From positions 1-64,000 of IMG/VR virus record IMGVR_UViG_3300020380_000001: a stretch of 64,000 bases of DNA; one strand, given 5' to 3'. Below, piece after piece: positions 6,925 through 20,518 of this stretch (position 1 is its first letter; each line of letters starts with the position of its first letter). A model generated the notes under the pieces. That model had not been told where the DNA came from. It ran no database searches and was given only the letters and a program-made list of their open reading frames with translations. The translations under genes were made by a program, and so were the position numbers.

Positions 6925-8529
6925 ATGACTTGGAAAAAGTATTTTAATCAATCGCCGACTAACACGAATCCAGGATCATTCAAATCTTCTGGCGCAAGCC
7001 ATGGGAGCTTCGATAAAGATGCAGCATGGCTACCAGAGTACTACTCCGGTTCACAAGACAGAATACACCGTTACGCGCAATATGACACAATGGACTTGGA
7101 TCACGAAGTTCATTTAGCGCTTAACACTATTGCAGAATTCTGCGTACAGGACGACGAAGACAATAAGCTGCCGTTTGAAGTTAGCTGGGTAGAAGATCCT
7201 ACTGAGAGTGAAACTGAAACTATTAATCGTTTATTGCGCCAATGGTGCGAACTAAACGAATGGCGCAGACGTGCGGTTACTACATTCCGTGGCACTATAA
7301 AGTACGGCGACCAGTTCTTTATACGAGACCCTGAAACTTTCAAGCTTCACTGGGTAGATGTGGCTGATGTAAAATACGTAATTGTTAACGAAGCTGACAA
7401 CAAACGTATTGAGTTTTACGCCATGGCTAATATCTCGTTTAACTTAAAAGACGGTGTTGCTAGTGATTTCGATCCTAATAACACTCACAACGCTAATAAC
7501 CTGTCAGTGCAACATTGGTCTAAATCGGCTAAGACTACAGGTGTTTCGTCAGCTAATACTGATGAAGAGATTACTTACATATCGGCTGACCACGTAGTTC
7601 ATATAAGTATGTCCGAGGGCATGAATATGACATGGCCGTTTGGCGTTAGTGAGCTAGAAAAAGTGTTCAAGATTTATAAGCAGAAAGAACTGCTTGAAGA
7701 CAGTATTTTGATTTACCGTATTCACCGAGCACCTGAACGCCGTGTATTCTTTATTGATACTGGTGACTTACCGCCACACAAGGCAAAAGCTCACTTGGAA
7801 TCAACTCGTATGGAAGTACAGCAAAAGCGCATACCGCAAAAAACAGGTAATGGTGAAAACAATATCATGGACTCGGCGTACAACCCGCTAAGCATGATTG
7901 AAGATTACTTTTTCGCAGTAACAGCGAGCGGTCGAGGCTCTCGAGTTGAAACACTTCCAGGCGGCCAAGGCCTAGGCGAAATTGATGACTTGAAATATTT
8001 CAACAACAAATTAATAAGAGCGTTGAGTATTCCTAGTTCGTATTTGCCTACTGGGCCAGAAGACGGTACGGCGCCTTTCCAAGACGGTAAGGTGTCTAAT
8101 GCGTTTATCCAAGAGTTCAGATTTGATAGATATTGTCGTCGTTTGCAAAATATTGTTATAGACGAATTAAACCATGAATTCAAGATGTATTGTAAGCATT
8201 CCGGTATCCGCGTAGATACTGGTACGTTTGACATCCAATTCTGTGAGCCTCAGAACTTCAGTAACTATCGTGAAGTTGAGATGAATATGCAGTTCGCTAG
8301 CGCGTATGCACAAATGTCGGATTACGAACATATCTCTAAACGATTTGCTATGAAGAAATACTTAGGCTGGGATGATAACGATATACTAGAAAACGAACGT
8401 CTTTGGAAACAAGAAAACGGCATTAAAGACGAGGCTGGTGAAGAAATCGCCAGAACCACAGTTGCACGTGAAGCTGGTCTAACTAGCTCTGCGATTAAAC
8501 AGTACCAAAACAAAGCTAGGGAAGAATAA
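6925..8529 (+). CDS. gp20: portal protein (T4 gp20-like)
   Basis: QKELLEDSILIYRIHRAPERRVFFIDTGDLP, EDYFF...GRGSRVETLPGG, IDDLKYFNNKL motifs. Confidence 0.95.
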   Translation: MTWKKYFNQSPTNTNPGSFKSSGASHGSFDKDAAWLPEYYSGSQDRIHRYAQYDTMDLDHEVHLALNTIAEFCVQDDEDNKLPFEVSWVEDPTESETETINRLLRQWCELNEWRRRAVTTFRGTIKYGDQFFIRDPETFKLHWVDVADVKYVIVNEADNKRIEFYAMANISFNLKDGVASDFDPNNTHNANNLSVQHWSKSAKTTGVSSANTDEEITYISADHVVHISMSEGMNMTWPFGVSELEKVFKIYKQKELLEDSILIYRIHRAPERRVFFIDTGDLPPHKAKAHLESTRMEVQQKRIPQKTGNGENNIMDSAYNPLSMIEDYFFAVTASGRGSRVETLPGGQGLGEIDDLKYFNNKLIRALSIPSSYLPTGPEDGTAPFQDGKVSNAFIQEFRFDRYCRRLQNIVIDELNHEFKMYCKHSGIRVDTGTFDIQFCEPQNFSNYREVEMNMQFASAYAQMSDYEHISKRFAMKKYLGWDDNDILENERLWKQENGIKDEAGEEIARTTVAREAGLTSSAIKQYQNKAREE

Positions 8530-10088: not shown

Positions 10089-11204
10089 ATGAGTGTTAAC
10101 AAAGTTTTAAAAAATGCTCAACTAAGTGAGTCTGATCGTAACATGGTTCAAGAAGCATGGGACAAACAGATCGCTGAGGCTCGTAGTTCAATTGGTGCTG
10201 AGCTTCGTCGTGAGTTTGCTCAAAAGTATGAGCACGACAAGTCAACTATCGCAGAAGCTGCTGAAAAATTCGTAAGCGATCAATTACGTGAGTCTATGAC
10301 CCGTATCGCTAATTACGAAAAAGAGCTTAGCGAAGCCAAGGCGAAGTTGCATAAACAGAATGCTAAGCAATTAAAAGCTATGCAGGAATTTGTGCTTCGT
10401 AAGCTTAAAGGCGAAGTTGGCGAGTTGCATGAAGATCGTAAACGTATGAACGAATCAGTTAAGAAAGCGAATAAATTCATTAAAGAGTCTATCGCTAATG
10501 AGTTAACTGAGTTCGCTCAAGATAAGAAAGCACTTAATGAACAGCGCGTCGCGTTGATCAACGAAGGCCGCGCTAAGTTGCGCGAAGCCAAAGCGAAATT
10601 TATCGCTCGTGCGAGTAGCAAGACATCTGAACTAGTAGAGTCAACTCTACGTTCGGAATTGACTGCTCTTCGCCAAGACATTGCCGAAGCTCGTGAAAAC
10701 AAGTTCGGTAGAAAAATATTCGAGGCATTTGCATCAGAATTTGGTGGCTCTCTACTTGTAGAAGGCACTGAGCTGGGCACTGCTAAGAAGGCAAACGCCA
10801 AGGCATCTCAAGCGATTAAAAAACTGTCTGAAGCACAAAACAAGCTTAAGGCGGAATTAGAAGTCACTAAAGATAACCTGGCTCGCACCCGCAAGATGAA
10901 CGAGATGTTATCTCCGCTTAGCGGGCGACAACAATCGGTGATGGAAGGTTTGTTAGAGAGTGTTCAGACTAAAGATCTGGACAAAGCTTTCAAGCGATAT
11001 CTACCAACTGTATTGGGCGAACAACAACAAAAACCGTCAGAAGGACGTTCTAAACTGTCTGAACGCAGAAACCGCAAGTCTACTTTGAGTGCCAGAGATG
11101 GCCGTCGTAGAGGTGCTGAATCTCGTCGGAAGCAAGTAAACGAATCGAATGATGACGTAGAATTGAAAGAGATTACACGACTAGCTGGTATCAGCAAAGT
11201 TTAA
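10089..11204 (+). CDS. gp22: major prohead scaffolding protein (T4 gp22-like)
   Basis: Coiled-coil, Glu/Lys/Ala-rich, located between protease and major capsid gene. Confidence 0.8.
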   Translation: MSVNKVLKNAQLSESDRNMVQEAWDKQIAEARSSIGAELRREFAQKYEHDKSTIAEAAEKFVSDQLRESMTRIANYEKELSEAKAKLHKQNAKQLKAMQEFVLRKLKGEVGELHEDRKRMNESVKKANKFIKESIANELTEFAQDKKALNEQRVALINEGRAKLREAKAKFIARASSKTSELVESTLRSELTALRQDIAEARENKFGRKIFEAFASEFGGSLLVEGTELGTAKKANAKASQAIKKLSEAQNKLKAELEVTKDNLARTRKMNEMLSPLSGRQQSVMEGLLESVQTKDLDKAFKRYLPTVLGEQQQKPSEGRSKLSERRNRKSTLSARDGRRRGAESRRKQVNESNDDVELKEITRLAGISKV

Positions 11205-11241: not shown

Positions 11242-12426
11242 ATGAGTAAGGTTCTTAATGAGAATTGGGGAGTTACCAAGAACGCTTTGCTGGAAGGCCT
11301 TCAGGGTTCTGTTCGCAAGACTACTGATGTAGTACTGGAAAATGCTCGAAAGCAAGCGCTTAGAGAAAGTGCCACAAGTGGTTCAACCGGTACTGGTAAT
11401 ATCGCCACTGTTAACAAAATTATGCTTCCGTTGCTACGCCGCGTTATGCCTAGCACGATTGCAAATGAAATCATGGGTGTTCAGCCTATGACTGGTCCAG
11501 TAGGCCAAATCCATACTCTACGTGTAAACTACGCAGAAGACGGTGCTGGTTTTAAAGCTGGACAAGAAGCGTTTAACCCGTTTGACATCGCGAAAGCGTA
11601 CTCAGGTAACAACGTAGCGAACTCGTCTACGTCACCACTACCTGGTCCAAGTTCAACTGCCTCTATGGAAGGTGAACCTGGTCGCCGTATGTCTGTAAAC
11701 ATCTTGAAAGAGACTGTTGAAGTTAAATCTCGTAAGCTATCTGCGAGCTGGACTTTCGAAGCTGCACAAGATGCTGAAGCTGTTCATGGCATCGACATCG
11801 AAGCAGAAATCATGGAAGCTATTGCGCAAGAAATCACAGTTGAAATCGACCAAGAACTACTTGGCCGCTTACGCAACCTAGCTGGCGCACCTGCACAGAG
11901 CTACGATCAGAACGCTGTTTCTGGTACTGCTACATTCGTAGGTGACGAGCACGCTGCTCTTGCAACTATGATGAACCTTGAAAGTAACTTGATCTCACAA
12001 CGTACACGTCGTGGTGTTGCTAACTTTGCGGTAGTAAGCCCTGTGGCACTAACTATCCTACAGTCTGCGACTACTTCTGCGTTCGCACGTACTACTGAAG
12101 GCAAGTTCGATGCACCTCTTAACACTAAGTTAGTTGGTACTCTGAACAACGCTATGAAGATCTACGTAGATCAGTTTGCGTCTTCTGACGAAGCTGTATT
12201 ACTAGGTTATAAAGGCAACGAGACTGACGCTGGTGCGTTCTACTGTCCTTATATCCCGCTTCAATCAGTTGGTCCAATCATTGATCCTACTACTTTCCAA
12301 CCAGTAGTAAGCTTCATGACTCGTTACGGATACTGTGAGCTGACTAACACAGCTAACTCTTTCGGTAACGCAGGCGACTACTACAGCCGTATCGGTATCA
12401 ACACTTCTAACTTATCATTCTTCTAA
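11242..12426 (+). CDS. gp23: major capsid protein (T4 gp23-like)
   Basis: MGVQPMTGPVGQI, KSRKLSASWTFEAAQD, EITVEIDQE, AGAFYCPYIPL, FMTRYG motifs. Confidence 0.95.
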   Translation: MSKVLNENWGVTKNALLEGLQGSVRKTTDVVLENARKQALRESATSGSTGTGNIATVNKIMLPLLRRVMPSTIANEIMGVQPMTGPVGQIHTLRVNYAEDGAGFKAGQEAFNPFDIAKAYSGNNVANSSTSPLPGPSSTASMEGEPGRRMSVNILKETVEVKSRKLSASWTFEAAQDAEAVHGIDIEAEIMEAIAQEITVEIDQELLGRLRNLAGAPAQSYDQNAVSGTATFVGDEHAALATMMNLESNLISQRTRRGVANFAVVSPVALTILQSATTSAFARTTEGKFDAPLNTKLVGTLNNAMKIYVDQFASSDEAVLLGYKGNETDAGAFYCPYIPLQSVGPIIDPTTFQPVVSFMTRYGYCELTNTANSFGNAGDYYSRIGINTSNLSFF

Positions 12427-12444: not shown

Positions 12445-12471
12445 AAAAAGCCGCTTTCGAGCGGCTTTTTT
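12445..12471 (+). terminator. terminator after the major capsid gene
   Basis: AAAAAGCCGCT-TTCG-AGCGGCTTTTTT. Confidence 0.9.
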
Positions 12472-12603: not shown

Positions 12604-12981
12604 TTGTGTGTAACACCTGAAAACTATACATGGATTATTACAATGCAGCCTTATGTATATTATGGCTACGGTATTAAACTAAGTGAAGTTACTGAAGAAG
12701 AGTTTGACCAAATAGAAGAGGATGACTTTTTTCAAATTACTTGGTTTAGTGACACTTGCCGTGAGCAAGAATACGGCATTGCATTTATAGACAATGCATA
12801 TCACTCACCATGGGACGAAGACACTACTGAAGATCCTTCCCTGTCTTATGCGGTGGATACTGGTGAAATTGACTCAGCGCGTATGAAGTATTTGCCGGAG
12901 TTACAAAAAGTTCTTGACCATCCGATGGTCAAAAAGTATAATAAGCAGATTAAATTTTACGTTTGTTGTACTGAAGTTTAA
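12604..12981 (+). CDS. hypothetical acidic protein (start probably ATG ~12643)
   Basis: ORF with phage-like composition. Confidence 0.65.
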   Translation: MCVTPENYTWIITMQPYVYYGYGIKLSEVTEEEFDQIEEDDFFQITWFSDTCREQEYGIAFIDNAYHSPWDEDTTEDPSLSYAVDTGEIDSARMKYLPELQKVLDHPMVKKYNKQIKFYVCCTEV

Positions 12982-12991
12982 CAGTAAACGT

Positions 12992-13062
12992 GGCCCTGAT
13001 TTGGCATAAGTAGCCGGTCTCTAAAACCGCGAAAGTGGGTTCGAATCCCGCCGGGGTCACCA
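12992..13062 (+). tRNA. atypical tRNA with CUA anticodon (amber suppressor / Pyl-like)
   Basis: Acceptor GGCCCTG/CGGGGTC + A + encoded CCA; anticodon arm CGGT-CTCTAAA-ACCG; T-arm GTGGG-TTCGAAT-CCCGC; short D-arm, no U8. Confidence 0.85.
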
Positions 13063-13084: not shown

Positions 13085-13213
13085 ATGGTAATTCCTGTTG
13101 TCAATATTTATGTCAACAACTCGTCGTTCATATGCTCGTTTGGCGGACTCTGTCAATATACGACATCATCTGGCGGCTGTCATTACCCTGGTCCATGCAA
13201 GTTTAAAGTATAA
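13085..13213 (+). CDS. 42-aa Cys-rich peptide (not in ORF track)
   Basis: AAGGA RBS; MVIPVVNIYVNNSSFICSFGGLCQYTTSSGGCHYPGPCKFKV. Confidence 0.55.
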   Translation: MVIPVVNIYVNNSSFICSFGGLCQYTTSSGGCHYPGPCKFKV

Positions 13214-13228
13214 TTAAGGAGAAACGTC

Positions 13229-13606
13229 ATGCGTTAGAACACTCAAAAACCATCACTTAAAATGTGGCGCTGGGGCAACGATAAGTTCGCCACCGGCTAT
13301 AAAATATTCACTCTATTCCATTCTAAAACACTCGGTATCGACTTGTATCTATTCAGGTATCCCGAGGGTTCATTCATTCCTAAACATAAAGATCCTAAAA
13401 CAAACGGTCCTACTACTCGTATAAACTTAGAACTCCGTAAAGCTCAGCAAGGCGGTGTTTTCAAGTGTAAGCGTAAATGGTCGTTGTTTGATAGATTGCA
13501 CGTCTTTAGAGCAGATAGAGACTATCACTCTGTGTCTAAAATAGAGAAAGGCTCTCGATGGGTTCTGTCTTTGGGGATAGCAAACGTGTTCAAAAAACCA
13601 CAGTAA
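13229..13606 (+). CDS. 2OG-Fe(II) oxygenase-like protein; strong-RBS start at 13229 has an in-frame TAG at codon 3 (track start 13262)
   Basis: HKD...H...R motif (IPKHKDP, YHSVSKI, SRWVL); TAAGGAG 7 nt before ATG-CGT-TAG, in frame with ATG 13262. Confidence 0.75.
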
Positions 13607-13710
13607 TAAAAAGGTACCTTATTCAATATAAATGTCCAGTAATTATGTAGGTTGCGCAGCTTTTGGATGAAAGATTGCTAAATAGACATATATAAAGAAT
13701 AAGGTACCCT

Positions 13711-14479: not shown

Positions 14480-17400
14480 ATGTCCTATGAATTTAATATC
14501 AATGGCGGCACTCGTTTTGTACTAACTAACGGTGAGTCATCAGGGATTGAAAACATTCGGTTAGAAGGGTCTGTTATTATAACAGAAGACTTAACTGTGC
14601 TAGGCAATAACACAGTTTTGGAAACATCAACCGTAACAATTGAAGATACAATTATCACTATAGGGCGCGGCACTGCTGAGCTAGACCCAAGTGATGCGTT
14701 TTTGTCTGGCGGCTTGATTGTAGAAAGACCGGCAGGTGAGAATCACAAAGGACTTTGGTACACACCTTCGGCGGGTAGCTTTATATTCGGCGAAACAGTA
14801 ACAGACAGTGAAGACCAAATTACTGAACTAAGCCCGGACGCCTACACTGACGTTTCTATGGGCCATTTAACTGTGCATTATAACGCTGACGGCGCTGCTG
14901 ATGCATATATTGGCGACCCGTCGTCTAAGTTTACTTCGTCAGGCACAGTACAGTTTGGTAAGCTTTCTAACGCTGAGTCAACGAACGTACAAGGCGAAAA
15001 CGCGTCTTTTGACAATCCCAAAGACGTCCGTGTTAAAACGGGCGGGGCTGTGCGTGAAGAAGTTCGCGTAGAAGACTCTAGCTTTGGTGAATGGCGCGTT
15101 CGTACATCGTCACTCGTAGGCGCAGCTGGCTCAGAAATCGTTTATGATCAAGACCTTTACATGGGCAACGGCGAGTTCACTTACAACGGTGACACCGTAC
15201 TTACTATGGGTTCTGGCGACTATGTTGTTTCTATTAATGACTTGCAAGGCGTAGTTGAGTTTAGGTTATTTGACTTACTAGATGTCGAAGGCGATCACCA
15301 AGAGTTTACGGGCGCGCCAAGGGAAGACGGCAAGTACTTGAAATTCAACGCTAGTGAAGGTGTATGGCTACCGTCCTTTATTACGCAAATAAACGAGATT
15401 GAAAACGTTAACGCTAGTGAAATTGAAGGCCATGTGTTGCAATATCGTCTAGACTCAGCAGACGGCGTGTATCGTTGGATGGAGTCTACAGTCGCTATGC
15501 CTGAGAAACTATTCCAGTTATTGGATGTAGACATGGCAACTGAGACAGTAGCAGAACCCGGCCAGTCTCTTATATGGTTTGAAGAAGACGAAGTATCCGG
15601 TGCAGGCTTCTGGCGTCCGTCATTTATCCCTAGTATACATTCAATCTTGGATGTAGAAAGCTCGCTACCAGACGCTGGAGACGAGGGTAAAGCCTTAATC
15701 TGGAATAACACAACAGGCAAGTGGGTTTTAAGCGCTACGAGCTTTGTAGAGGTGTTAGACGACCTTGCTGACGTTAACGGAGTACTTAACCTTGACGATA
15801 AGGCGTTTCTTAAGTATGACTTGGACAATTCGCAATGGGTGCCTGGATTTGTAGACGACATTGGTGAAATTACTAATGTTAGGGAAATGACAAACGGTGC
15901 TACCCAAGACAACAAGATTCTTAAGTACAACTTCAGTGACCAAGTCTGGGAAGCCGGTATAATTGACGACTTAGCTGAAATCGGTAACGTTGATATTGCT
16001 GATTACGGCACAGTAGAAGAAGGCCATACAATAAAGTGGGACGTGGTAAACGCTCGCTGGGTTACTGGACCTGCATTGTCTACGTTATTTGATGTAACTG
16101 ATGTAAAAGAAACTGAAGGCTCCATGGCCGAAGGACGCTTCCTTGTATGGCGCGCAAACGGTGCAGATGGTCCTGGTTGGTATCAGTCTGACATGGGCCA
16201 AGTGCAAGTTCTGGATGATTTGAATGACGTTATTATCGCTCAAGGCGACTTGTCTGACGGAAAAGTCCTGCGATACAATAGTTCTTTATCCCAGTGGGAA
16301 CCGGGTATAATACAGCAAATTACTGAGATCGGCGATGTTACTATTGACTATGATTCGCAGTCAATTAACGGCATTAAAGATCAACACGTATTGAAGTGGA
16401 ACGGTAGTCGCTTTGTAAATGGATTTGTTAGTAAAATTTCAGACATTGAAAATGTTGACGCAGTTGACAACCCGACTGACGGTGACTTCTTACGTTATGT
16501 CGAGAGTACAGGACGCTGGTCTAACAGTCCGATCAACTCAATCGACGAAATAGTAAACGTTGAATTAGGCGGAATCGCTGACGGCAAAGTACTGGAGTGG
16601 GATTCGTCTGCGAACAGCGGGCAAGGTGCGTTCGTCCCTAGTGCAGGAACCCGTGTCGAGTATTTCGGTGATTTAATTGATGTCACTGTCCCGGAAGACC
16701 CTACCCAAATAACTGTTGGTTCTGCACTACGTTTTAACGGTAGTAAGTGGACACCGTACGATTATTCATTCCCGGAGGCTATCGGTGATATGAATAATGT
16801 TATTATCACTGGCCCTACTACTGGTGATGCTCTTTTATTCAACGGCACTGACTGGGTAAACGGCAACATACCTCATCCTACTCGCTTAGAACAGCTACGC
16901 GATGACGTTGATTTAAACACTCCGCTCAATGGCGAAGTGCTAATGTACGATGGTACTAATTGGATTAACTCGACGGCAGTTGTGGTTGATGTGTTAAACG
17001 ACTTAGATGACGTTGAACTAACTGCGCTAAGTGATGATCAGTTCTTGCGTTATGACATTGCCGAAGCGCGATGGAAAAACCAGTCTGTAAAAATTCCTGT
17101 TAACATATTAGATCTTGAAGACGTTAATCCTAACTACAGATTACCGGACGATAACCCTAATTACGAAGAACCCCAAAACGGTGAAGTACTTCGATTTAAC
17201 GGTGTATTTTGGCAAGGCGTAACACTGCCTGTTTACGATCAACTAGATGATTTGCTGGATGTGAGTATTAGTGGTGCAGCCGTTGATCACGTGTTGTATT
17301 ACAATGGCGCTGGCTGGCAAAACCGCAAGCTAGACTTCATATCCAATATGGGTGATTTACTTGACGTTAGCGCTGATTCGCCTACTAATGGATCCATATT

Positions 17401-20400
17401 AATTTATGACGGCCCGACCTCTGAATGGGTTGCAAGCAGTGTAGGCGATTTAAACATCGTAATTGACGATTTAGATGATGTCGACACGCTTAGTGTACAA
17501 GCAGGTCACGTGCTAACTGCTGTGCCTGACGGTGACGGTTTCTCATGGACTAACCAAGCCCCGGCTTATAGTACTTTAGGTTCACTAGATGACGTTAATG
17601 ATGGCTCACGCGCACTAGGCAAATACTTGCGTTATGATGGCACTCGCTGGGTTGCTAGTGAGCTAGTTACTAGTGAAATCTTGGACTCGTTGATTGAAGA
17701 GTTATCACTTGATGAGCTAGGCGATGTCACTATAGACAATACCCTTGACACCGGCGACATGCTTGTTCATGTTGAAGGCGTATGGGTTAATCAAAACGTA
17801 GGTGAAGCTTTCGGTCAATATGCAACCATTGGTGACTTAGGTAACGTAACCGCTGATACACCGCTTGCTGGTGACACTATTGTCTATGACGATGTAACTG
17901 GCAAATACGTGTCTGTTAACTTGGTTCAAGTAGTTAAAACTGGTCTAAACCTTGCAGAACTAGCAGGAACTGAAGACGGCGAACAATATGTCTGGGACGC
18001 AACTGGTGCCGAGTGGGTAGTTAAACACTTAGGTGACCCAACAGGCGCACCTGACGCTGGTAAAGTCCTTACTTGGGATGGCACAAAATGGACCACTCAA
18101 GATTTGCCTGAAGACAAGTTCATCAAACTATTGAGTGAATTAGACGACGTTCAAACCGACGATTTGGCTGCCATACAAAACAACCAAATACTACGCTGGA
18201 ATGCTGCTAGTCAGTTCTGGGAAAACGTAGATTGGCCTAGTATTTCACTGCACATGCTTGAAGACGTTAATTTCGTGACACCTGCTGTAAATGATTTAGT
18301 TGTTTACGACGGTACCGAATGGGTTAATTTAGATTTACCGGTAATTGCAGGTAACGTCCTTGAACTGGATAACTTGTCTAACGTAAACGCTTCTGTTCCT
18401 AGCGATCACCAAGTATTAGCGTATAACACCGCTGATGGCGAGTGGCAAAGTACTGATATTGCTACAGTTGCAAATAACAACTTGAATTTGTCTGACTTGG
18501 CAGATGTGTTCGATGGTGTTTCTCCGAGTGGGGAGACAAAATTCTTGGCTTGGGACTTTGACAATTCTCGATGGAGTGTTAGTTCAGTATCGTTAAACGC
18601 TTTCGCAATTAACGAGTTAAGCAACGTTACAATATCGTCGCCGACGTCTGGTGATTTCCTTAGATTTGACGGCGCAGAATGGATAAATGATAGCGTAGTT
18701 ATCCCAACTACATTAGATAGCTTGTTAGATGTTAGTACAACAAATCCGTCAGACGGCGCGTTCTTAACATACGAAGAACAGTCAAATGAATGGGTTGGTA
18801 GAAACTTTCTAATAGTTGAGTCATTAAGTGATTTAACAGACGTTAATACAACTGGTGTACAAGCAGGTGACACACTAATTTACCAAGGCGGCGCATGGGT
18901 TCCTATCCAAGTTCCTCCAGTAACACTTGAGTCACGTGACTTGACTGATGTGTCGGATACGGCTGCTACTGACGGACAAGTTCTATTATGGAACGAATCT
19001 GCAGGGCAATGGGAACCAAACGACATGCCGGATCCGTTTATTCCTGCGGTCTTAAACGACTTAAGTAATGTTAACGTTCCTGCACCGTCCGCTGATGACG
19101 TGCTTGTTTTTGACAGTGTTAGTGGTGAATGGATAGCCGCTGCTTTTAACACGTTAGTTAACATAGAACTCGGCCAGCTTACTAATGTGTCGTTGTCAAA
19201 CGTTTCTGATTCACACGTACTAGCGTATAACTCAGCAACTGGTGATTGGGAGAACGCGACCTTAGGCTCACTAGGTATTGGCGTGAGTGACTTAGGTGAT
19301 GTTTCCGGTACAGCGAATGCCGACAATCGTTTCCTGATTTATAACGACACTACTGGCCAATGGGATATAACTGTATTCCAAACAATTAGTATGATTGAGG
19401 ATGTCAATGCAGCTGGCGCAACAAGCGGTGATGCCCTTGTGTGGAACGGCACCCAATTTGTTCCTGGCTCTCCGGGCAACGTAAATGCCGAATCACTAAA
19501 TGGACAACCTGCGTCTGCATATTTGCGCTCAGATGAAGCTGATGTTGGTGTGGCTCTAGAACTTAGTGACGTAAGACCTCTTGAGTTCTCTAGCACATCA
19601 GAGGTAAGAATTGGCGCTGCCGCAGCACCGCGACTTGGTATATACGCCCCGCGTGTTAGTGTGCTGGCCGATGGTATATCGTTGGATTATAGTCCGCTTG
19701 ACACAGCTGGTGTCAAACTTGTACCCGACACGGCGCCTGCACTCACTGAAGCTGGCTTCATGTGGTGTGATTCAAGTGATAACTCGTTAATGTTTTATAA
19801 CGGTTCTGAACAGCTTAACATTTCAAATATAGCGACTCAGAATTATATCGTTAATGATACTGACGGTGAGCTTACTAGCCTAACTATTACGGCAGCCGAA
19901 GCGAAAATGTATGTAGAGGGTACGACTAACGAGAATACACGTTTCACGTTCTCTGACAAAGCCACAGACAAAGCCGCACTTGTTGACATGGGCGCAAGCA
20001 TACTAACTGATATCGGCGGCACTAACGGTAACGCTGGCGCTCAGACGGTAGCAGTCGCTGGTAAAACAGTGTTGTATAGTGACGCTGGTGATGTATACAG
20101 ACGTAACGGATCCGGTACTGATCGTTTAGCGACTATCTCTGACATTCAGGCTGAAATCATAACAGCTAACGCAAGTTATACGACAGTAAGTGGTGACTCA
20201 GTAGCGCTAAGTGAAGGTAATAGTCTAGTTCGCTATGCTATTCCGGATAATACAACAAGTGTGATGAACATCTCTGGTATTGATCAATTAGAAACTGGTA
20301 ACTCAGTAGTTATAGCGGCAACGGCAAATACTGTTATATCTAATTGGGGTACTAACTCTAGATTGAGAATGGAGGTTACAGGCTTAACGGGCATGTACGT

Positions 20401-20518
20401 AAACGGCGTTTATACGTCAGGTACTACACATATTATTGACTTAAGTGTTACGCCTAACATTACACTTTACTTCTACGAAGACGGATCCAATAAGTACTTT
20501 ATTTGTCAAGCGTCCTAG
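14480..20518 (+). CDS. giant acidic repeat fibre/whisker-like virion protein (2012 aa)
   Basis: About 37 imperfect LxDLxDV...G..LxW/Y...W repeats; N-terminal DLTVLG..T.....VTIED motif; NAESLNG..ASAYLRSD fibre motif; CTAAATA at 14442. Confidence 0.75.
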   Translation: MSYEFNINGGTRFVLTNGESSGIENIRLEGSVIITEDLTVLGNNTVLETSTVTIEDTIITIGRGTAELDPSDAFLSGGLIVERPAGENHKGLWYTPSAGSFIFGETVTDSEDQITELSPDAYTDVSMGHLTVHYNADGAADAYIGDPSSKFTSSGTVQFGKLSNAESTNVQGENASFDNPKDVRVKTGGAVREEVRVEDSSFGEWRVRTSSLVGAAGSEIVYDQDLYMGNGEFTYNGDTVLTMGSGDYVVSINDLQGVVEFRLFDLLDVEGDHQEFTGAPREDGKYLKFNASEGVWLPSFITQINEIENVNASEIEGHVLQYRLDSADGVYRWMESTVAMPEKLFQLLDVDMATETVAEPGQSLIWFEEDEVSGAGFWRPSFIPSIHSILDVESSLPDAGDEGKALIWNNTTGKWVLSATSFVEVLDDLADVNGVLNLDDKAFLKYDLDNSQWVPGFVDDIGEITNVREMTNGATQDNKILKYNFSDQVWEAGIIDDLAEIGNVDIADYGTVEEGHTIKWDVVNARWVTGPALSTLFDVTDVKETEGSMAEGRFLVWRANGADGPGWYQSDMGQVQVLDDLNDVIIAQGDLSDGKVLRYNSSLSQWEPGIIQQITEIGDVTIDYDSQSINGIKDQHVLKWNGSRFVNGFVSKISDIENVDAVDNPTDGDFLRYVESTGRWSNSPINSIDEIVNVELGGIADGKVLEWDSSANSGQGAFVPSAGTRVEYFGDLIDVTVPEDPTQITVGSALRFNGSKWTPYDYSFPEAIGDMNNVIITGPTTGDALLFNGTDWVNGNIPHPTRLEQLRDDVDLNTPLNGEVLMYDGTNWINSTAVVVDVLNDLDDVELTALSDDQFLRYDIAEARWKNQSVKIPVNILDLEDVNPNYRLPDDNPNYEEPQNGEVLRFNGVFWQGVTLPVYDQLDDLLDVSISGAAVDHVLYYNGAGWQNRKLDFISNMGDLLDVSADSPTNGSILIYDGPTSEWVASSVGDLNIVIDDLDDVDTLSVQAGHVLTAVPDGDGFSWTNQAPAYSTLGSLDDVNDGSRALGKYLRYDGTRWVASELVTSEILDSLIEELSLDELGDVTIDNTLDTGDMLVHVEGVWVNQNVGEAFGQYATIGDLGNVTADTPLAGDTIVYDDVTGKYVSVNLVQVVKTGLNLAELAGTEDGEQYVWDATGAEWVVKHLGDPTGAPDAGKVLTWDGTKWTTQDLPEDKFIKLLSELDDVQTDDLAAIQNNQILRWNAASQFWENVDWPSISLHMLEDVNFVTPAVNDLVVYDGTEWVNLDLPVIAGNVLELDNLSNVNASVPSDHQVLAYNTADGEWQSTDIATVANNNLNLSDLADVFDGVSPSGETKFLAWDFDNSRWSVSSVSLNAFAINELSNVTISSPTSGDFLRFDGAEWINDSVVIPTTLDSLLDVSTTNPSDGAFLTYEEQSNEWVGRNFLIVESLSDLTDVNTTGVQAGDTLIYQGGAWVPIQVPPVTLESRDLTDVSDTAATDGQVLLWNESAGQWEPNDMPDPFIPAVLNDLSNVNVPAPSADDVLVFDSVSGEWIAAAFNTLVNIELGQLTNVSLSNVSDSHVLAYNSATGDWENATLGSLGIGVSDLGDVSGTANADNRFLIYNDTTGQWDITVFQTISMIEDVNAAGATSGDALVWNGTQFVPGSPGNVNAESLNGQPASAYLRSDEADVGVALELSDVRPLEFSSTSEVRIGAAAAPRLGIYAPRVSVLADGISLDYSPLDTAGVKLVPDTAPALTEAGFMWCDSSDNSLMFYNGSEQLNISNIATQNYIVNDTDGELTSLTITAAEAKMYVEGTTNENTRFTFSDKATDKAALVDMGASILTDIGGTNGNAGAQTVAVAGKTVLYSDAGDVYRRNGSGTDRLATISDIQAEIITANASYTTVSGDSVALSEGNSLVRYAIPDNTTSVMNISGIDQLETGNSVVIAATANTVISNWGTNSRLRMEVTGLTGMYVNGVYTSGTTHIIDLSVTPNITLYFYEDGSNKYFICQAS

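Follow-up and report, generated by a model that had tools for sequence, protein, structure and literature searches.

In the code 15 crAss-like and Lak phages (preprint 10.1101/2021.08.26.457843) a tRNA(CUA) is encoded by phages of standard-code hosts, many genes (structural and lysis) are recoded, many late genes carry in-frame stops, coding density under code 11 collapses, and in-frame TAG codons have been proposed to act as a post-transcriptional gate on expression; the same authors noted that suppressor tRNAs occasionally appear in standard-code relatives, and that non-canonical phage tRNAs escape detection. Suppressor-anticodon tRNAs have also been reported in standard-code jumbo phages without an identifiable target: for XacN1, which carries two tRNA-Sup(CUA) genes, read-through of 18 amber stops revealed none (PMC5852040), and the tRNA-Sup(TTA) of phiKp24 was left unexplained (PMC8386662). 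Here, a stripped-down, apparent amber-suppressor tRNA was found in a standard-code marine jumbo phage next to the one gene that appears to need it, a small oxygenase-like gene whose third codon is a stop, and the same pairing recurs in dozens of divergent phages, which may explain why such phages carry orphan suppressor tRNAs.

The stretch of DNA analysed (the window) comprises the first 64,000 nucleotides of IMGVR_UViG_3300020380_000001, a complete 306.5 kb jumbo-phage genome with direct terminal repeats, recovered from marine metagenomes. Its T4-type major capsid protein is 60-67% identical to those of the PA5oct, Rak2 and 121Q-like jumbo phages. The element lies just downstream of the scaffold-like and capsid genes, after a strong terminator-like hairpin (Table 1). 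A covariance model built from the single sequence (R1) found nothing next to the capsid gene of 76 more distant relatives, in which the flanking genes were absent as well, indicating that the locus is a lineage-specific accessory island rather than a conserved feature of the capsid module. Near and distant DNA searches of the phage collection with the locus and the element gave only generic tRNA-arm matches.

Table 1. Coordinates of the features at the locus (positions of the window).
Position	Strand	Feature	Observations
10089-11204		Scaffold-like gene	
11242-12426		Major capsid gene	Matches phrog_138
12445-12470	+	Intrinsic-terminator-like hairpin with a T run	11-bp stem and T tail, after the capsid gene; marks the upstream boundary of the accessory island
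12914-12942	+	Near-consensus sigma-70-type promoter, candidate promoter of the cassette	TTGACC-N17-TATAAT, 11 of 12 matches, about 50 nt upstream of the element; a consensus match only, not shown to be functional
12992-13062	+	Compact tRNA-like RNA with anticodon CUA	Acceptor 12992-12998 / 13052-13058; mini D hairpin 12999-13011; anticodon stem-loop 13015-13029; anticodon 13021-13023; T arm 13035-13051; discriminator A 13059; encoded CCA 13060-13062
13085-13213	+	42-codon Cys-rich ORF	Between the element and the gated gene in this lineage only; mostly synonymous differences against the loci L003-L005; probably a real small gene and not a conserved part of the cassette
13216-13221	+	Shine-Dalgarno (SD) AAGGAG	7 nt before ATG 13229
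13235-13237	+	Gate codon, in-frame TAG at codon 3	ATG CGT TAG AAC, followed by A; identical in 5 strains
13229-13606	+	Stop-gated gene, small Fe(II)/2OG-oxygenase-like protein	125 codons including the gate; phrog_13746 at 5e-34; annotated in databases from internal Met 13262 or translated with TAG=Q

The original prediction had described a complete tRNA-like fold with a CUA anticodon at this position, and this observation was confirmed. The sequence has a 7-bp acceptor stem with two G.U pairs, A at position 8 instead of U8, a 13-nt mini D hairpin (ATTT-GGCAT-AAGT) in place of a normal D arm, a canonical T arm (GTGGG-TTCGAAT-CCCGC), discriminator A and an encoded CCA. The anticodon loop (CU-CUA-AA) is canonical, although the stem has 4 bp plus a bulged C instead of 5 bp, so that the anticodon arm could be scored neither as typical nor as atypical of a tRNA. 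ARAGORN, one of the detectors suggested in advance to check the call, found nothing in the window at default settings, whereas it found 23 canonical tRNAs clustered at 173-197 kb on the other strand of the genome; the element was reported only at an 80% threshold (-ps80), among about 140 spurious calls, or in mitochondrial mode. The Rfam tRNA model (RF00005) aligned end to end, skipping the D arm, but scored 26.2 bits, below the gathering score of 29 (E = 0.0014 on a 251-nt search). The thermodynamic fold of the single sequence was unremarkable (z = -1.0), and on this genome alone the case would be weak. Among four near-identical strains, the only substitution inside the element converted the U6.G67 wobble into U6-A67.

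The neighbouring coding sequence is a partner that the original prediction had not noticed. The gene following the Cys-rich ORF is annotated from ATG 13262, but 33 nt upstream, and in frame with its body, lies AAGGAG-N7-ATG CGT TAG. Homologues keep an 11-residue N-terminal extension, and the Q at the third position in the public protein collection turned out to be a TAG that gene callers had read as Gln. The DNA of divergent homologues showed the same design each time: an SD-like motif, an ATG, zero to six codons, an in-frame stop, and a conserved leader (..K-P-T-L-R-L-W-R-W-G) running into the enzyme body. In a census of non-redundant homologous loci all had this arrangement (n = 39/39), with the stop at codon 2-8 and always in frame with the body, being TAG in 36 and TAA in 3; the locus L099 has ATG TAG as well. 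The position equivalent to the window's Met12 is a CTN or TTA leucine codon in many loci, so no ordinary start codon is available there downstream of the stop, although the window and the loci L088 and L148 do have an ATG further downstream. In contrast, a more distant sister subfamily of the protein (RP12, FLC9, Phabio, Lu11, D6 and Vp_R1; 35-47% identity) has an ordinary start and no gate.

The gated protein was predicted by AlphaFold (AF2; pLDDT 93.3) to be an all-beta jelly roll with a DSBH fold, with the leader modelled at pLDDT about 94 as part of it; the alignment used left out two rows from annotated GenBank records. The best Foldseek matches were AspH and prolyl-4-hydroxylases (P4H) at TM about 0.6, and the HxD...H iron triad and a basic residue (H50, D52, H97 and R107) are invariant, supporting its placement in the Fe(II)/2-oxoglutarate oxygenase superfamily, although the Pfam PF13640 hit was below its cut-off (19.2 against 27) and catalysis was not assayed. 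The body of the gene is under purifying selection.

To determine whether the element travels with the gate, CUA elements were sought in the 1.5-5 kb fetched around each gene by eye, by a strict pattern scanner, by ARAGORN and by two covariance models. They were found in 92% of the TAG-gated lineages (n = 34/37), in two preferred placements, either ending 25-40 nt before the gate codon, directly in front of the SD, or abutting or overlapping the last 15-31 nt of the coding sequence, including its stop codon; in the window's lineage the 42-codon ORF has been inserted between the two parts. Of the three other lineages, one (G002, a complete 344 kb genome) has a canonical tRNA(CUA) 60 kb from its gated gene, and two sit on very short contigs. 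In L099 the pattern match was a tRNA-Arg(UCU) according to ARAGORN, and the CUA element was found with the family model R2. The strict scanner gave exactly one hit per genome in G000 and G002, so chance adjacency is excluded. Two cultured phages carry the cassette, with the element unannotated in both: Xanthomonas phage XaC1, where the coding sequence is annotated from the internal Met as 2OG-Fe(II) oxygenase, and Vibrio natriegens phage nt-1, with ATG TAG and the element starting right after the gene's stop.

A formal count of base pairing was performed on a 15-member alignment of the short class (68-71 nt), the only alignment used for counting, since MAFFT alignments of all the elements mis-registered the 5' acceptor strand. 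Standard pairs were formed in 92.0% of helix cells, against 54.1 +/- 2.0% in shuffles (0 of 500) and 28-44% when partners were slid, 18 of 20 pairs changed on both sides, and the covariation score was 0.98 against 0.21, indicating that the element is far beyond chance. A further control on 13 lineages gave a T stem with 63/65 cells paired against 44.3 +/- 3.4 (0 of 2000), with acceptor-stem bases only 33% identical between lineages. The acceptor helix (99% paired, all 7 pairs covarying) and the T stem (98.6% paired, 4 of 5 pairs covarying) behave as in tRNAs, and A73 is present in 14 of 15 members, although some relatives have a divergent T loop (ATCGTGT). The inner anticodon stem has three solid pairs and a conserved mismatch at positions 31-39 (unpaired in 13 of 15), whereas CUA in a YU-CUA-R loop is kept in every member while the stems drift. 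Most members have no D stem; instead, a 4-bp outer helix, which was never a search criterion, joins the 3' part of the D region to the variable region, is 90% paired and covaries at all four pairs. The window's copy and that of the locus L087 lack this helix and keep a mini D hairpin with a 5-nt GG-containing loop, while a few lineages (the locus L100, G002 and XacN1) have full cloverleaf tRNA(CUA) genes with the same anticodon-arm signature. The R2 model separated members (42-76 bits) from ordinary tRNAs (34 bits or less), and scored the window element, which was in its training alignment, 49.2 bits against 25.3 or less for the 23 canonical tRNAs of the genome.

The use of TAG across the genome, the statistics of tandem stops and the presence of a phage aaRS or release factor had been put forward beforehand as tests of the suppressor idea, and all three were examined. 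Under the standard code the genome is 91.9% coding and TAG ends 56 of 391 ORFs. Frames of 100 or more codons on both sides were split by TAG in 2 cases, against 2 for TGA and 19 for TAA, and the single TAA that splits a frame of about 4,800 codons is just two adjacent genes (TAA TTT ATG), so that genome-wide amber read-through was rejected and the earlier statements on the code hold. The gene at 13229 is the only convincing SD-ATG-early-TAG gene in the genome. Both tandem TAG-TAA stops pointed out originally exist, but back-up stops are not enriched after TAG genome-wide (p = 0.26). No RF-1-domain protein was found, nor any PylRS/PheRS-type class II core (PF01409) in the complete genome, with positive controls; pylBCD and other aaRS families were not searched. 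The base after the gate is A in 35 and G in 4 of 39 loci, whereas genuine TAG stops of this genome are followed by T (19), G (9), C (7) and A (4). In E. coli a 3' purine favours amber suppression and a 3' U favours termination, an effect not tested here, although the A after the gate could simply reflect a leader rich in Lys, Asn, Thr and Ile codons.

The original interpretation, a conditional suppressor rather than genome-wide recoding or else a decoy, was thus partly supported: the first part fits the evidence and can be made specific, whereas the decoy is not supported and the resemblance to tRNA-Pyl is superficial. The reading favoured here, with moderate confidence, is a structurally reduced amber-suppressor tRNA forming a two-part cassette with a stop-gated client gene. 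What our comparisons demonstrate is a covarying, tRNA-shaped RNA with an invariant CUA anticodon, physically coupled to a gene with a conserved, in-frame, early UAG whose post-stop leader is conserved as protein; the steps that follow are inferred. The RNA and the oxygenase mRNA lie on the same strand a few dozen nucleotides apart behind a promoter-like site (TAA-gated homologues have TTGACA-N17-TATAAT in the equivalent place), and are presumably made as one transcript, from which RNase P and 3' trimming would release the tRNA; charged by a host synthetase, it would have to outcompete RF1 at the gate for full-length protein to be made. Contigs from four metatranscriptomes cover the element and the gene, which is only suggestive, since they show presence in RNA libraries and may include DNA carry-over; transcription start, processing, aminoacylation and read-through were not measured, and for aminoacylation and use by the ribosome the conserved matching stop codon in the linked gene is indirect support only. 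Decoding competence without a normal D arm is assumed by analogy with D-armless mitochondrial tRNAs and tRNA-Pyl. The gate lies 7-13 residues from the W-R-W-G motif, a variable distance suggesting that the identity of the inserted residue probably does not matter; a comparison with the nearest isoacceptors was uninformative (at most 0.71 identity), and A73 plus U35 would only weakly suggest Lys or Gln by E. coli identity rules. The enzyme is a minimal Fe(II)/2OG hydroxylase whose substrate was not identified; its usual home inside phage tRNA arrays makes a target in the translation apparatus or in tRNA possible, but this is not shown.

More speculatively, because tRNA and mRNA would share one promoter, protein output would depend on transcription twice, making a coherent feed-forward or delay gate that keeps the enzyme off until the phage's own tRNA has accumulated, and where the element overlaps the end of the coding sequence, RNase P cleavage would remove the mRNA's stop codon, so processing and translation of any one transcript would compete. 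This regulatory purpose is conjecture. Some observations do not fit easily. No UUA or family-type tRNA was found within +/-10 kb of the three TAA gates, no copies of which were present in the viral collection, and their full genomes were not examined; these lineages may use a distant suppressor or near-cognate read-through, or may have reverted to an internal ATG where one exists. Moreover, 42 ORFs of at least 80 aa end in TAG without enriched back-up stops, and efficient suppression would extend them. XacN1 carries tRNA(CUA) genes without this client, so CUA tRNAs must have other uses as well. In its broadest form, judged about as likely as not, the cassette would be a natural, mobile, self-contained single-gene code-expansion unit, with a minimal suppressor tRNA, D-armless in most members, licensing translation of the gene with which it is co-transcribed and which it sometimes overlaps; it could be the seed from which wider stop-codon recoding in phages evolves, and would give the first identified client for the orphan suppressor tRNAs of standard-code jumbo and T4-like phages.

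Among the alternatives, a general-purpose suppressor survives best, although it is considered unlikely. The tRNA would then act mainly on other UAG stops, of host or phage genes, for example to extend proteins or disturb host termination, with the oxygenase as a secondary passenger or sensor. XacN1 has two tRNA(CUA) genes and no detectable homologue of the gated gene, so the oxygenase cannot be the only reason such tRNAs exist; in L100 and G002 the tRNA(CUA) is canonical and lies 1.9-60 kb from the gene, and many ORFs of this genome end in TAG. However, this reading does not explain the universal gate in the subfamily and its absence in the sister subfamily, nor the tight physical coupling in at least 26 lineages, and there is no back-up-stop adaptation after TAG genes. 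Slightly less likely, the element could be a tRNA-like processing or stability signal, an RNase P substrate as with mascRNA or T4 tRNA-like RNAs, that shapes the mRNA end, with ATG-N-TAG as a minimal leader ORF and the main ORF translated by re-initiation or non-canonical initiation. Its position in the 5' UTR or over the 3' end of the mRNA, a weak mascRNA-type Rfam match (22.4 bits), the missing D arm, the unmatched TAA gates and the downstream ATG of a few loci are compatible with this view. Against it stand the invariant anticodon, the in-frame mini-ORF in every locus of the census (one in three expected for re-initiation), the conserved and predicted-structured residues between stop and body, the many lineages without a start codon there, and the canonical, clearly tRNA-type CUA genes that replace the compact form in L100 and G002.

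A decoy against anticodon nucleases or other tRNA-targeting defences is very unlikely: phage tRNAs can replace host tRNAs cleaved by defence nucleases, and the element is non-canonical, but no known anticodon nuclease targets a CUA anticodon, and a decoy would not require a conserved in-frame stop in the linked gene. A tRNA-Pyl-like carrier of a non-canonical amino acid is at least as improbable; the CUA anticodon, small D region, short variable region and the ARAGORN label tRNA-Pyl, which only reflects the anticodon, are outweighed by the lack of a PylRS/PheRS-type core in the genome, by the canonical T loop and GG in the D loop, the discriminator A and an anticodon stem that is not 6 bp, and by the variable position of the gate, which argues against a catalytic special residue. 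Decay, a tRNA pseudogene beside a gene knocked out by a nonsense mutation, is effectively refuted, despite the sub-threshold detector scores and a TAG that in this lineage alone could be a single C-to-T change from CAG, because both features are conserved, with covariation, across dozens of lineages whose proteins are only 38-64% identical.

The cassette, if it works as inferred, would show that stop-codon reassignment in phages can exist at the scale of one gene in an otherwise standard-code genome, a plausible first step toward the block-wise recoding of crAss-like and Lak phages. It also defines a family of very compact suppressor tRNAs, apparently functional in bacteria and missed by current tRNA finders, that could be useful as orthogonal parts for genetic-code expansion. 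For annotation, public pipelines either truncate this gene at an internal Met or translate it with TAG=Q, and so mislabel short contigs as code 15. The presence of the cassette in nt-1 and XaC1 makes the idea directly testable.

Full-text literature searches found no description of a conserved suppressor-tRNA plus stop-gated-gene cassette, which does not prove that none exists, and the closest framework is the recoding of code 15 phages, from which this locus differs in that the genome is standard-code, a single convincing gene is gated, the stop is always at codon 2-8, and tRNA and client are physically joined in a mobile cassette found in several phage families. The tRNAs of XacN1 share the anticodon-arm signature GAGC-CUCUAAA-ACUC with a C31.A39 mismatch, but a target is identified here that a read-through screen of annotated stops cannot see, because the stop lies in an unannotated N-terminal extension. 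tRNA-Pyl, mammalian mt-tRNA-Ser(UCN) and D-armless mitochondrial tRNAs have a short or absent D arm, a short variable region and an extended anticodon arm, and show that such shapes can still decode; the family described here keeps a canonical T loop and a GG in the linker, with an interrupted outer helix below a 3-4 bp inner anticodon stem, A73, and no dedicated synthetase found in the genome, where aaRS families other than the PylRS/PheRS type were not searched, whereas tRNA-Pyl has a 6-bp anticodon stem, no G18G19, a non-canonical T loop and G73. In Streptomyces, bldA tRNA-Leu(UAA) likewise makes specific genes dependent on one dedicated tRNA, but it reads a rare sense codon in many unlinked genes, rather than a stop codon in one linked gene. 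The nearest functional analogue is a synthetic feed-forward leak dampener (PMC7969014), in which amber codons placed early in a gene, together with a co-regulated suppressor tRNA, form a coherent feed-forward loop that suppresses leaky expression; that system is engineered and uses canonical suppressors, whereas the one described here is natural and uses a D-arm-reduced tRNA, its regulatory role being inferred.

A 42-codon Cys-rich ORF with its own SD was found between the CUA element and the gated gene, in this lineage only. When compared with the close strains L003, L004 and L005, it showed about 12 synonymous and 3 non-synonymous differences, indicating that it is probably a real small gene, although no family match was obtained. 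Close strain variants carried an insertion of about 340-416 nt between the gated gene and orf13711, which was also seen in a metatranscriptome contig. Further along the window, a 2,012-aa protein that ends in TAG was detected, built from dozens of degenerate repeats of about 30-40 residues (..L.DV......G..L.Y......W..), which is probably a fibre or decoration protein. The coordinates of these and the other features are listed in the table.

Coordinates of additional features in the window, in the complete genome of this phage (G000) and in the loci of other phages
Sequence	Position	Strand	Feature
Window	13085-13213	+	Cys-rich ORF between the CUA element and the gated gene
Window	13599-13676		Place of the strain insertion between the gated gene and orf13711
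L003-L005 (close strains)	about 7363-7811		Locus of the insertion between the gated gene and orf13711
Window	14480-20518	+	Repeat-built protein ending in TAG
G000, outside the window	189501-189597	-	ARAGORN call 'tRNA-Stop(tta)'
G000, outside the window	291908	-	TAA between two open frames
L109 (Vibrio phage nt-1)	1292-1451		Phage tRNAs with leucine anticodons
G002 (complete genome of another phage)	37.7-40.8 kb		Phage tRNAs with leucine anticodons

The annotation of the gated gene was examined in the public ENA/Logan contigs L082 to L087, where public gene callers had translated it with TAG=Q on short contigs; standard-code phage fragments are therefore being labelled as genetic code 15 because of this single codon, whereas elsewhere the gene is truncated to its internal Met. 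The 3' ends of the gated gene were inspected in seven loci with the downstream arrangement (L140, L143, L144, L150, L153, L161 and L173), in which the tRNA-like element overlaps the last 15-31 nt of the CDS, including its stop codon, so that RNase P cleavage would leave a non-stop mRNA. In the TAA-gated lineage (L183 to L190), the neighbourhood of the ochre-gated variant holds further oxygenases (PF13640 and PF05118), radical-SAM/SPASM and QueC-like genes, RNase T and a tRNA array, and the gated genes there have perfect TTGACA-N17-TATAAT promoters. A possible read-through site was also considered in G000, where one TAA separates open frames of 1,320 and 3,505 codons in the same frame; inspection showed the sequence TAA TTT ATG, revealing that these are two adjacent giant genes and not a read-through site.

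Phage tRNAs of about 77 nt in the nt-1 locus and in G002 carry leucine anticodons (UAA, CAA, UAG) but lack the long variable arm of bacterial tRNA-Leu. The nt-1 tRNA(CAA) just upstream of the gated gene scored 38.8 bits with the CUA-family model, above ordinary tRNAs. In the main tRNA array of G000, ARAGORN called a 97-nt 'tRNA-Stop(tta)' between two tRNA-Ser genes. It looks like a class II tRNA but has a weak anticodon stem (three G.U pairs) and A33, so the anticodon assignment is doubtful; the related phage phiKp24 has a similarly unexplained tRNA-Sup(TTA).
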